Positions 20,346 through 25,389 are shown, numbered from the whole stretch's first letter. The stretch is DNA of 63,275 bases, filler included, from Choristocarpus tenellus KU-1152 (GCA_964200185.2; 11 parts of 11 records of this genome joined end to end with filler, not necessarily neighbours in it), one strand, 5' to 3'. Notes: generated by a model not told the origin, from the letters alone. Program-made: numbers and translations.

Positions 20346-21592
20346 TGTGGGCAAGGGGTGTACGTATTGGGGTTGTCGCTAGTGGCAAACAGAGGCCGAA
20401 CTTTGTGAGTGGGGNNNNNNNNNNNNNNNNNNNNNNNNNNNNNNNNNNNNNNNNNNNNTTAATTAATTAANNNNNNNNNNNNNNNNNNNNNNNNNNNNNN
20501 NNNNNNNNNNNNNNGCGAGGGCGGGCCGCACTGCAAAGGCGGCCCTGGGAGTGAGGGACACGGGGGCGCCCTTCCTCCGGGGGGGGGGGTCGATGGGGGG
20601 GTTGCCATGCCGACGTTCTGACCCTCGACGTGCCCAGTTCTGGTCTCAAAATCCCCAAAAGACCCCTACATTGACGGCTTGAAGCACCTCGAGTTTGTAC
20701 CTGATGATCCTCGACCCTCACCTTTTCTGAAAGCTGATATTGTCAACCCGCTTCCATTCTGTGGCGTTATCGTCCGATTCGGCGCCGTTCTCGCTCGGCG
20801 AGCCCAGATGTTTCACAGCATAAACTTATGGCACAGACGTAGTGTTATTATATAATCCCATTTATTTTGACCAAAACATCATGATCAATGTCGAATATCA
20901 GTCAACTATAAATGCAAGTGTTGAAGCACAAAGCGCATAGTTGAATCACAAAAAATACAAGATATCGAAGTACAACTAATGCAAAGATAATTTGAACCCT
21001 TAACGTCGGAAAAATATAACAATTGTTCCACACCCATACCTTGAAACTTCTCACCAGAAAGAAGTATTATTTGATACAAAAAGAAGTAGCTCCACTCTCA
21101 TTCTTCGTTCGGTTCAATAATGTCAACCACCAAGTTTTAACCCATCACCAACAAGCATGTTGCTTATCACATCAAAAGTACACAATGCATTTTCTTGACA
21201 GAATCCAACATCCTCCTCCACACTAAGATTGGTTTTCGTCTATATAGTTGCATTCACCCGAAAAATACTAATAATATATGCCGAATCAACATTTATTTGA
21301 TGAGGTTTAGATCTCCTGTCAATTCAACAAAGAAAATATCGAGTTACTTTGCCCATTGTTTACTGTTCCCCTTAACGGCATCACAGGAGAGACCCCACTT
21401 TGATCATATCAGACAACGTTGTCCATTGACATCAGCTCCTAACTAGTCAACCTTTTTGTGGTATTGAAAGTGGTTCTTTTTGGGGCCGTTGTTGTGTTCC
21501 GTCCGTCCACCTACTCAAACCTCGTAACCACATCGCTCACTCGCAATCTTGCAAATTGCGTTGAGCCTACATAGCTTGCAACTGGCGTCAAC

Positions 21593-24500
21593 ATGAAGAT
21601 CAGTTATCTAGCCATACTTGGGCTCCTTAGCGCCAGTGCTAGGCACACTGTCTTGCAGCTTGAAGAAGATAAAAATTCCCATCACAGAGAACTGCGTGTA
21701 TCGGTGAGGATACCTAGTGCATATAAAAAAATATTTTTGACGAGCCATCCAATATTCAGGGTCACTACTGATAACTCTGTGAAGGATGTGATGCTTCTAT
21801 TCTTGGTACACTCCACATAGCACGTACCTCTTGTGGATATCTAATCAATACCAAAGGTCGTCTTTCCCTCTGAAACCCTGCACTTTCCCCCCTCGGTTCG
21901 GTGCTTCAATCACTCCTCGAAATTGCCTTCACTACTGCAAATCACAAGGACTACGACCATGCTAACCTTCAGGGTCAAAGTATCTGGGGGGGGGATGTCG
22001 GTGTTCGTTTTTCACCCTTTTTTCGATTTTCACTNNNNNNNAAAAAAAGAGTTGTTTGATCGAAACGGACGCCCCCTCACAAACCACCCTCCCCCCCCCA
22101 GATACTCTTACCCTTCATCGTCTGCTGACGGTGACTTAGTTTGCTTTGGCGCAGCACTATTCTGCTACTGATACTACGTGAAATTAGCAGAGGAGACCTG
22201 TATTGTGGTGAACTGAGTGGGGTAGAAAATCGCTAGCATCTAACAACCCATCATTAACCATTTGCGTGCTTTGTCAGCAGTAGGATCTAGGAGTTTGATA
22301 CAAATTTCGAACAAAGAGATGCGAATTACTGCTCTTCAGTGTCCTTGATGTAGAAATCTTGGTGGCATTGCAGAGAACTTCGTTTTAGTATATACAGATC
22401 TGACGAGCAACTGCAAAAAGTAGCCTCAACAGAAATAAGGAACGCTGGGTGTCTTCCAGTAATTTTCGTCAGCATTGCCTTGTGACTCGACACATTCCTT
22501 CAATGCCTCCAAGGGTTGGATCGCCGCGTATTGTTGATCTGCTGTCCACGTTCAGGGTTACAAGGAAAATGACGACAATAAGGATTGAAAGAGGAAGGAC
22601 AAGGACATCAACAAGCACTATGGCCGTGCGCTGTCGGTGAGAATGCCTCGGTTACGCCATGCATATATGATGGAAGTACATATGTTTACTTAATTGTGCT
22701 CCGAATCTATTGCACTACCAGCAGTAGTGATTTTTTATTAGGTTGAAGATAAAATGCATCTATTAATGTAAGACCATACATCCCTGGTGCTCTCCGCTTC
22801 CACTTTTAAACTATGTTATGCTTTCCTTTTGGACACTTTTGTGCAAAAACTATGTCAAATTAGTGCATTCCAATACTTCATTCATTTTCCCCATGCCCGT
22901 GTCGGTAAAGGCCTTGGCACTTTCCTCTTTCCTTGACCATATAATGTCTACTGTTGTATCTCAATACTTTGAATAGGACTACAAGGATGGGCCCTACAAG
23001 GACAAGAACGACGACAAGTACCATGCCCGTGCCTTGTCTATGAAGTTGCTTGCTAAGGTCGCTTTAAATTCATCAGAACACGAGATCTATTCGATTGTAC
23101 GCTAAGTAAAGCGTCACTCTTGTAGTACCTCTGTGTCTAGCGTGGTGGAGGTCATACTGCTTCTTTTGATGGTACTTCATATCATTTCCCTCTTACGATA
23201 ACCCCAAACACACCCTCTCTGCTGGAACCCTGCATTTCTCTGGTCGGTTCGATGTTGCATCTCCCTGCTGGAAACCGCCCGAATTGCTGCAAATTGAAAG
23301 GACCATGATGAACCGGTGAGCATGGTTGAGTACATTGTTTTTCTACTGTAATAGTAGGAGTATTTTACAACGCCTGGAGTGCTCACTGAGTGCAGAGTAT
23401 AATATCACCCGCCCAAACCATAATGGTGTGGTCATGTTGCTTCTCTACTAATGTCAAGCTTTCACACCATGTCCCTCTTGCGGTATCTAACCCCAAACGT
23501 CAAACATTCTGTTGGAACCCTGTACTTTCAACACTTTGACGTTTTCACCCAACTCAAAGTAGGATGGAGGTTATGTTGAGCCAATCCAATTGAGAGGTAG
23601 GCAAGGTTGCACTTTAAGGATCCCAAGAAAGGTTAAAAAAAACTATATTTTGTACTGTCGCAGATAGAGCATTTACTGAATTGTGTGGTGTCACTTTGCG
23701 TGTGGAGAAAGAGGAAATATCATTTTTGAGTACATTATTGTTCCCGTAGAGGAGCTAAATTAGAGTGTAATTGCACTGGGCAAAAGGATGATTTAGAATG
23801 CAAAAGGATTCAAACCTGCGTATCCCTCAATTGGTGTGGCTCTGTTATCTCTAGCCACGTCCCTCTTGCGATATCCAATACCAAACATGACCGTATCCAT
23901 TGGTTGAACTCTACACTTTCTCCACTTTACTCGTTTCTTCTATACCTGATAAAACTTGCATAAACTGCTACTATTACCAGGAATACGACCATGAAGACCA
24001 TGATCGTCTACTGAGGGTGACTTTGCTCTGAGCGAAAGTATCTTAGAGGGTACGAGTTTTTCCCTGTTTGTCCATTTGGGCCTTGGCTTCCCTCGGGGTT
24101 CTTATGACATTTTCCTACTTCCTAATATTTCGGAGTAGGTAAAATGTATACGTTATTAAAAGGTGTGTCCGGAACAAGGATATTGACATTTCCTAACAAA
24201 CACGATAGCCAAAATTACATCGAAATCGCAACATTGGATTTTGGCTCCCAAATGGACGCAGCTCTACCCTAAGATACTTTGGCTCTCTGAAGTATTATTT
24301 AACTAATTAGCCCATGAAAATATGTATTCTGGAGTATAGTGCGTAGAGTATGGTACTAACTCGAAAAATGTTCTCTTGAATTTGCCAAGCAACTTAAGCA
24401 GGTAGCCCTCTGTAGCATGAAGTAAGACATGAATGCGTTGCGTGTATAGATACGTAGAGTGGTTGAGTTTGCGAAATATCTGTGTAGAAAGAAGGTCTTG

Positions 24501-25011
24501 CACAGTATGTGAAGGAAAACATGGATACTTTTGAACAGTATTTCTCATCAGCAGCAATATCTAACTCTACTTCAATGCCCCCCTTGCCCCCATTGCGACA
24601 CACCAATTGCGACGGACCATTGTGTTGTGTAATTTTCTACCGTACCAGAGCTACAAGGATAAGGACGATGAGACAAGAAGGACCCTAAGCGAAAGGACAA
24701 GGACGACGACAAGAAAGACCGCAAGAGGAAGGATAAAGGCGATGACAAGCACCATATTCGCATGTTGAAGGTACCTCACGTCTCGTTCCTCATTTCTCAA
24801 TAGTAGTGCAGAGCAACCTATCTGTGTGGTAGTCTTCCGCGGTTATGTGCAGCCAATTGCCCACACAAGGTGCACCATAAACTCGTCTTATGCGTCATTT
24901 TAATCTTTTGTATCGTCTTGGGTTTGTCCAGTGTGTGTCCTTATTGTCAATCACACACTCACTTGTTTTCTCCCTTGTTCATTTATTTTCTTCCTCTTCC
25001 TGTTGCAGTAA
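21593..25011 (+). CDS. secreted repetitive peptide precursor, one xY...HxRxLx module per micro-exon; partly disabled. Exons 21593-21703, 21949-21971+22118-22130, 22556-22636, 22977-23039(or 23057), 23301-23315, 23981-24016, 24649-24770, stop at 25009-25011
   Basis: Signal peptide MKISYLAILGLLSASA, then ...HHRELRVS | DYDHANLHRLLT | GYKENDDNKD*KRKDKDINKHYGRALS | DYKDGPYKDKNDDKYHARALS | DHDEP | EYDHEDHDRLLR | SYKDKDD(-1)DKKDPKRKDKDDDKKDRKRKDKGDDKHHIRMLK | TAA. Exons are AG-preceded, phase 0 and GT-followed, except exon 4, whose donor reads AT. The last acceptor has a long pyrimidine tract followed directly by TAA. Confidence 0.7.
21972..22113. mobile_element. MITE family B copy inserted inside a coding micro-exon
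   Basis: gggtcaaagtatctgggg...ccccagatactcttaccc with TTCA/TTCA duplication. Removing it restores gac tac gac cat gct aac ctt cat cgt ctg ctg acg|gt. Confidence 0.85.
23578..23842. mobile_element. MITE family C, copy 2
   Basis: TIR gagccaatccaattgagagg / cctcaattggtgtggctc; 4-bp TSD TGTT/TGTT. Confidence 0.8.
24030..24285 (+). mobile_element. MITE family A copy
   Basis: gagcgaaagtatcttagagggta...gatactttggctc; TSD TCT/TCT. Confidence 0.9.
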
Positions 25012-25239
25012 TTAATCGGAACTTCTACTACTAACATTCTGCATTCATAGGAGTGTCGGATGTACGCCAGCGATGCAGTTCTAAGCTCCATTAGTGACGT
25101 TAAAGCACGTGATGAGCTTCAATAATGCTAAGGATGCGCTTGGATATTATGCTCGTGTTGCTGGCTTTGTATTTGCTGTTGGTATTAAATATTCTCATTG
25201 GTTCAAGGAGAGAAATTAGAAATAGAAATAAGAGGTGGG

Positions 25240-25389
25240 GGGGCAAAGTATCTTAGAGGGTAGAGCCGTGTCCATTTGGGGTTCAAAATCCAATGTTGCG
25301 ATTTTGATGTATTTTTGACTATGGTGTTTGTTAGGAAGTGTCAATATCCTTGTTCCAGACCCACCTTTTCATAACGTATACATTTTACC
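25240..25389 (-). mobile_element. MITE family A copy, truncated by the contig end
   Basis: caaagtatcttagagggtagagccgtgtccatttgggg matches the family end. Confidence 0.85.

Follow-up and report, generated by a model that had tools for sequence, protein, structure and literature searches.

We examined a stretch of 63,275 nucleotides (nt) of DNA (the window) and focused on a gene-like series of small exons that runs from an ATG at position 21593 to a stop codon at 25009. We think it fairly probable that this series is a decaying copy of a small lineage-specific family, whose members would encode a secreted polyprotein with one charged module per phase-0 exon, cut at RxL(x) sites. An initial annotation had described a secreted precursor of this kind, with one phase-0 module per exon and RxLx at the module ends. 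That description is supported by sequence statistics and by related contigs, but the copy in the window is likely a pseudogene. The analysis covered positions 20515-25389 of the window, which have a GC content of 42% apart from a GC-rich 5' end, and in which no open reading frame (ORF) exceeds 84 amino acids (aa).

Modules, exon borders and tests against chance

The start ATG is preceded by an in-frame stop six codons upstream. Exon 1 closes with HHRELRVS followed directly by GTGAGG, which places RELR (residues 32-35) two codons before the donor, and the last exon opens with TAA, both as first annotated. Between them, five modules start with x-Y directly after an AG (DYD, GYK, DYK, EYD and SYK; Table 1). 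The claim that each ends in RxLx exactly at a donor stands for HRLLT, HYGRALS, HDRLLR and HIRMLK, but not for HARALS, which AT follows. Two module types can be told apart, a short A-type (xYDH..RLLx) and a longer, K/D-rich B-type (xYK..KxHxRxLx). The A-type comprises exon 2, a five-codon DHDEP exon, a dead unit and exon 5, and the B-type comprises exons 3, 4 and 6, giving the order signal/pro - A - B - B - A - (A) - A - B - stop. The modules are charged, 12-40 aa long and carried one per phase-0 exon; they are separated by seven introns of 238-664 nt, and GTGA is read at five of the seven donor positions. The module peptides are Cys-free, with the A-type exon 5 acidic (pI 4.8) and the B-type mixed-charge and basic; exon 6 holds an internal 36-nt K/D repeat. 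About 130 nt of upstream intron are homologous among exon 2, the DHDEP exon, the dead A-type unit and exon 5, and thus whole intron-plus-exon units were duplicated.

Table 1. Features of the analysed region, in window coordinates (MITE, miniature inverted-repeat transposable element)
Feature	Position	Strand	Description
Exon 1	21593..21703	+	37 aa; ATG, signal-peptide-like N-terminus of ~16-17 aa, acidic pro-segment, phase-0 donor GTGAGG
Exon 2, short A-type DYDHANL-X-HRLLT	21949..22130	+	MITE M1 inside; donor GTGACT; AG-free run 90 nt
MITE M1	21972..22113	.	142 bp; GGG..CCC termini; 4-bp duplication TTCA; high copy
Exon 3, long B-type GYK...HYGRALS	22556..22636	+	K/D-rich; in-frame TGA at 22586-22588
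Exon 4, B-type DYK...HARALS	22977..23039	+	21 aa; AT at donor position 23040; next in-frame GT 23058
DHDEP micro-exon	23301..23315	+	15 nt, phase 0; truncated A-type without Tyr or RxL; donor GTGAGC
Dead A-type unit	23455..23577	+	homologous acceptor region (approximate limits); AG 23558-59, then stop; cut by MITE M0
MITE M0	23578..23842	.	265 bp; GAG..CTC termini; 4-bp duplication TGTT; intronic
Exon 5, A-type EYDHEDHDRLLR	23981..24016	+	intact; donor GTGACT; AG-free run 124 nt; end HDRLLR
MITE M2	24030..24285	.	terminal repeat family same as M1; intronic; very high copy
Exon 6, B-type SYK...X...HHIRMLK	24649..24770	+	122 nt; frameshift at ~24669-24672; donor GTACCT
Last exon	25009..25011	+	starts with stop TAA; strong polypyrimidine acceptor ahead; only 5' end placed
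MITE M3	25240..25389	.	M2 family, opposite orientation; cut by edge of analysed piece

We compared motif counts with those in 2000 dinucleotide shuffles of positions 21560-25030. An AG followed by x-Y-[K/D] occurred five times (shuffle mean 0.38) and H..RxLx followed by GT also five times (shuffle mean 0.12), and no shuffle reached five for either pattern, both of which were picked post hoc, after viewing the data. For the looser RxLx followed by GT, five were observed against 1.27 expected, a count that 1% of the shuffles attained. On the minus strand the first pattern was seen once and the second not at all. Because the patterns were chosen post hoc, we used the length of AG-free sequence at acceptors as an independent signal. 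Ahead of the seven acceptors the AG-free runs measure 90, 40, 64, 148, 124, 92 and 75 nt, compared with a background mean of 16.5 nt over 261 AG sites. Five of the seven are among the ten longest, and none of 200,000 random seven-site sets matched their mean. The 148-nt run, ahead of the DHDEP micro-exon, is the longest in the analysed region. At four acceptors (21947, 23299, 23979 and 24647) the AG-free zones are unusually long (90-148 nt), and a CTAAY lies as far as 83-103 nt ahead of some of these acceptors, a splicing trait that could help to place the host. An HLRALS at 22259 was rejected as a further exon, as GT does not directly follow it and it has no in-frame x-Y start.

The module ends are conserved at selected residues. 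Numbered for a cut after RxLx, the P4 Arg and P2 Leu are invariant in all five modules while their codons vary synonymously (CGT/CGC, CTG/TTG), and P1, P3 and P5 carry four, three and five different residues, respectively. The ends read RLLT, RALS, RALS, RLLR and RMLK in the modules and RELR in exon 1. At the module starts Tyr2 is invariant and position 1 is D, G, D, E and S. In ungapped comparisons the ends of the B-type exons are 56-72% identical, versus 14-33% for their flanking introns, which are at background.

Contigs related to the array, aligned at 80% likeness, match it at exons and mostly not at introns. Two such contigs follow exon 1 and depart from the window copy 13 nt beyond its donor. 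Alignment resumes, for at least the deeper of the two, at the exon 2 acceptor (21870-21962) and farther on reaches B-type sequence, with joints 21716>21870 and 21962>24693. In two sequencing runs, X1 and X2, depth rises over exon 4, and in X1 only it also rises over exon 3, with adjoining intron bins at 20-29. The exon architecture is therefore supported by motif and AG-exclusion statistics, by conservation at P4 and P2, and by the exon-wise alignment of related contigs. On these sequence grounds, we conclude that the array has, or at least once had, the architecture of a spliced protein-coding gene.

Breaks in this copy and traces of relatives

The modules first annotated are present, but four of the five x-Y modules are broken, which that account had omitted. 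The DYD.. and HRLLT halves of exon 2 are separated by M1, a 142-bp inverted-repeat element with TTCA duplicated on either side. A TGA at 22586 closes the reading frame of exon 3; the HARALS of exon 4 is followed by ATGAAG, with AT in place of the GT donor; and the SYK and HIRMLK of exon 6 lie in different frames. Exon 5 is the sole intact x-Y module. Contigs from X1 and X2 cross the introns, and each shows at most one difference from the window (X1 records 2-5, 7 and 8 at depth ~20; X2 records 9-13 and 16 at ~6). The exon 3 TGA is reproduced in X2 record 11, and the exon 6 frameshift, without a gap, in X1 record 7. The exon 4 AT is found in X1 record 4, whose 1560 nt include a single difference of unlocated position, and also close to where X2 record 12 ends; X1 records 3 and 4 span the M1 junctions. 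Assembly error was rejected as the origin of the breaks, since the same breaks are present in these DNA contigs. With four of the five x-Y modules broken, we conclude that this copy is most likely a pseudogene.

Some of the breaks have possible in-frame escapes, namely an inner GT..AG within M1, a GT 18 nt past exon 4 and skipping of phase-0 exons. Use of the M1 sites (GT at 21974, AG at 22101) would keep the frame (25+29 nt), and M1 is a possible transposon-derived new intron in a coding exon. A 7-N assembly gap lies within M1 at 22035-22041.

Several points weigh against reading the array as one copy of a secreted precursor family. The stretch is present in three public runs of one study, none of them RNA, and the junctions are predicted from sequence. 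X2 is a second sample, and X1 may be the assembly's own source. The signal peptide of exon 1 is putative, called from hydropathy. The relatives' sequence was read over exon 1, and intact family members are putative. In exon 1, the differences listed between the window copy and its relatives number 13, in 11 codons, with no stop and no indel among them; four of these codons are synonymous and 7/11 non-synonymous. The deeper related contig (126.8 in X1, 33.5 in X2) stands at 6.2x the window copy in X1 and 5.7x in X2, and the other (16.8 and 8.3) at ~1x; although contig depth does not measure copy number directly, the ratio is similar in the two samples. Finally, searches of protein, family, structure, RNA and contig collections, which are weak for low-complexity queries of 20-40 aa, turned up no homologue. 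The equal depth ratio points to some six near-identical copies, and one more, within the same genome; other family members probably exist.

The third run, X3, is labelled as another organism and contains an identical 252-nt piece of 21100-21351 at depth 2, plus the same MITEs. This match is probably a trace of the window's organism in that sample.

Proposed processing, known systems and alternative readings

In intact members, the protein would enter the secretory pathway with a signal peptide and a short pro-segment ending in RELR, followed by the string of modules, and a processing protease would cut each RxL(x) site. This protease would most likely be similar to site-1 protease (S1P, or SKI-1) and cut after RxLx, in which case the cut would equal the exon border in all five modules. 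The initial annotation had taken RxLx for an S1P consensus, which agrees with the RxxL/RxLx consensus of S1P and SBT6.1 (PMC13082318). We infer cleavage by S1P from the Arg at P4 and Leu at P2, the S1P/SKI-1 substrate residues, which all five x-Y modules and the RELR of exon 1 share. Alternatively, the cut could be of the RXLR/PEXEL type, since in oomycete RXLR and Plasmodium PEXEL motifs the cut follows the Leu (10.1101/2024.04.16.589758). Cleavage there would leave Tyr at position 3, not 2, and the Tyr-2 peptides first proposed are hypothetical. The acidic residue or Gln of PEXEL-type sites, two places past the Leu, is present where the next exon starts with D or E and absent where it starts with G or S.

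Processing would release short Lys/Asp/His-rich Cys-free peptides, and exon duplication and loss would alter the peptide set. In a stronger form of this proposal, each phase-0 exon would be a cassette for one mature peptide with the protease site at the splice donor, and duplication, skipping or loss would reprogramme a secreted Tyr-2 cocktail; we regard this form as possible but doubtful. The apparent gene dosage (~6 near-identical copies) and the polyampholyte composition weakly favour a bulk role outside the cell, in wall, mucilage, adhesion or ion binding, over that of a hormone.

Several known systems resemble the array in part. The diatom silaffin Sil1p, silacidin and frustulin precursors have a signal peptide, an RXL-ended pro-segment and repeats that each end in an RXL-type motif, with charged peptides (PMC4557024, PMC5647440); RXL stands at the repeat C-terminus and the peptides are released (PMC4557024), by a protease that is unproven (PMC5647440). 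The diatom parallel first drawn holds for RXL at the repeat ends (PMC4557024), and the array has both the signal peptide, by hydropathy, and the RXL-bounded repeats. It fails for the Ser-rich cores: the silaffin and silacidin peptides are phosphorylated, rich in Ser and linked to biosilica, whereas these modules are K/D/H-rich with Tyr2 and 0-6% Ser. Their borders are RRxL/RRL versus RxLx at the exon end here, and no sequence similarity was found. Legume nodulin-25 (Nod25), of the Nvf-28/32 modular nodulins, is also secreted and built from few repeat-module types with one exon each; alternative splicing drops modules and an S1P-type RK/RLLL motif is present (PMC13649901). In Nod25 this motif occurs once, in the conserved C-terminal region, whereas RxLx closes each of the five modules here. 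The stop directly after the last module leaves no counterpart to the Nod25 C-terminal region (PWxKKN, RK/RLLL), and no similarity was detected. In fungal KEX2-processed repeat proteins (KEPs) the processing sites are dibasic, KR or RR, whereas the conserved border here is RxLx; KR pairs are confined to the interior of B modules, and no dibasic pair lies at a module border. The likeness to KEPs lies in a signal peptide and repeated cores freed by a secretory-pathway protease (PMC6339444, PMC9769878).

Plant SBT6.1/S1P substrates (RGF/GLV/CLEL, RALF and PROSCOOP) share RxLx/RxxL in a secreted precursor, and two modules share an Asp-Tyr start. Unlike the at least five modules here, these precursors each yield one C-terminal peptide, and the array has no Pfam match. 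Two plant parallels first drawn did not hold up. The CLEL/RGF site lies well upstream of the mature peptide, where the S1P cut is merely pre-processing (PMC7162652), and the Asp-Tyr start of sulfated RGF, PSY and CIF is found in only two of five modules, the others starting GY, EY and SY. The Ectocarpus ROCO-LRR and NB-ARC-TPR genes also carry one module per phase-0 exon and leave inactivated exons in introns (PMC3341825), but they encode intracellular folded repeats of fixed length rather than secreted peptides with putative cut sites.

Homology queries were single exons or ORFs, with broken exons read in pieces or with X. Searches of the ESM Atlas, Pfam, PDB and Rfam were blank. Looking up 10 ORFs for exact cluster membership gave nothing, and neither did scanning metagenome and viral contigs with tblastn confirmation. 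The exon-1 ORF, the exon-4 ORF and a MITE frame gave no candidates among proteins 0.55-1.75x the query length, a range outside which full-length relatives would fall. A phmmer search of 1.84 billion representatives returned two matches, which we rejected as unrelated tandem-repeat proteins with scores summed over weak stretches. The literature searched gave no description of this combination, in which every exon ends in a cut motif. The initial annotation had likewise recognised no described family. Because the searches are weak for such queries, the blank result does not prove novelty. Its mode of action would resemble that of silaffin/silacidin precursors or KEPs, and its construction that of Nod25 and of the shuffled Ectocarpus exons. 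Judged by sequence features, the array is a putative repeat polyprotein precursor that fails a defining test of each tested family, and we assign it to none.

Other readings of the same features were weighed. The array could encode an uncut, intrinsically disordered secreted repeat protein, with RxLx as a structural or sorting element of the repeat. Processing is read from sequence, the last module ends in RxLx with nothing behind it, Nod25 exon modules may be mere spacer (PMC13649901), and diatom RXL processing is described as hypothesised (PMC5647440). We nevertheless consider this reading rather unlikely: the selective conservation of P4 and P2, and the same motif after the signal peptide, fit a protease consensus, and silaffin repeats too end in RRIL/RRNL (PMC4557024). 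It is similarly improbable that the released peptides were signalling ligands (hormone or pheromone), Tyr-sulfated like plant RGF, PSY and CIF, a proposal that differs from a processed polyprotein in function only. The invariant Tyr2 has acidic neighbours, the A-type peptides are short (12 aa), and fungal KEP and alpha-pheromone repeat precursors can yield signals (PMC6339444). Yet few modules have Asp before Tyr, the B-type modules are low-complexity and variable in length, and the SBT6.1 cut in CLEL/RGF is far upstream of a single C-terminal peptide (PMC7162652).

The state of the copy itself admits another reading, to which we give little weight, in which it is still expressed: splicing would skip its broken modules or restore them through alternative sites already present, and a reduced set of peptides would result. 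Exon 1 is open, exon 5 is intact, and the in-frame escapes described above would preserve the reading frame. There is precedent in the inactivated exons of live Ectocarpus ROCO/NB-ARC genes (PMC3341825) and in Nod25 isoforms without modules (PMC13649901). These points are set against the broken x-Y modules, a further truncated unit and a dead one, and an exon 1 that is ~12% diverged from its multi-copy relatives, mostly non-synonymously among the differences listed. An oomycete-type RXLR or other parasite effector is very improbable. RELR stands after the signal peptide at the usual RXLR position, less than about 40 aa past it, and exon 5 contains RLLR, but the motif recurs in every module. 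RXLR genes are usually intron-poor, and this gene has seven introns. With RXLR/EER defined as strings (PMC3174193), no EER-type triplet follows within 40 aa; none occurs in exons 1-3, and the first [ED][ED][KR] is DDK in exon 4. The low-complexity modules include no folded effector domain and gave no family match. Chance patterns in non-coding repeat DNA would accord with the lack of RNA and homologues and with a MITE-rich region. This explanation is strongly disfavoured, and hardly credible to us, given the motif counts, the AG-free zones, the codon-level conservation and the exon-limited alignment of related contigs. We retain the processed, secreted polyprotein family as the preferred reading.

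Mobile elements, host lineage and significance

Two very high-copy MITE families (M1/M2/M3 and M0), Sola-like in their G(A/G)G termini and target duplications of 4 bp, occupy the region, and tens of thousands of contigs align to the stretch, chiefly on them. M1 (TTCA) and M0 (TGTT) have the short terminal inverted repeats and 4-bp duplications of Sola-type non-autonomous transposons, a 4-bp duplication being that of Sola2 (PMC3627910); M2 is imperfect in these features. The analysed piece contains no coding element of this kind. Scans with the MITE ends gave two metagenome matches with only a 19-mer in common, as expected by chance, and none in viral or prokaryotic collections. Upstream of the gene, 20583-20830 is another high-copy GC-rich repeat with a summed depth of ~25,000 in X1. 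TATAAA occurs at 20907, and a 93-nt AG-free run (21470-21565) ends at an AG (21564-65) just 5' of the ATG, where a 5' untranslated-region intron with an upstream first exon is possible. In Ectocarpus the median intron is 524 bp and Sola-type elements occur (PMC12477816). The intron sizes near this median, the donors and the Sola-type elements are compatible with a brown-algal origin.

Exons of 5-40 aa and low complexity escape ORF tracks and homology searches, and such families may be missing from annotations. This copy matters mainly as a pointer to intact relatives. To our knowledge, and within a limited literature search, no processed secreted-peptide family of this sort is known in brown algae. 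If the host is a brown alga or a relative, the array would represent a candidate for such a family, signal or adhesive, in that lineage. The predicted peptide ends differ by cut register, after L or after Lx. If intact relatives are expressed and cut, RxL(x) polyprotein processing would extend beyond diatom biosilica proteins, and the family would be a clear example of cleavage sites that coincide with exon borders.

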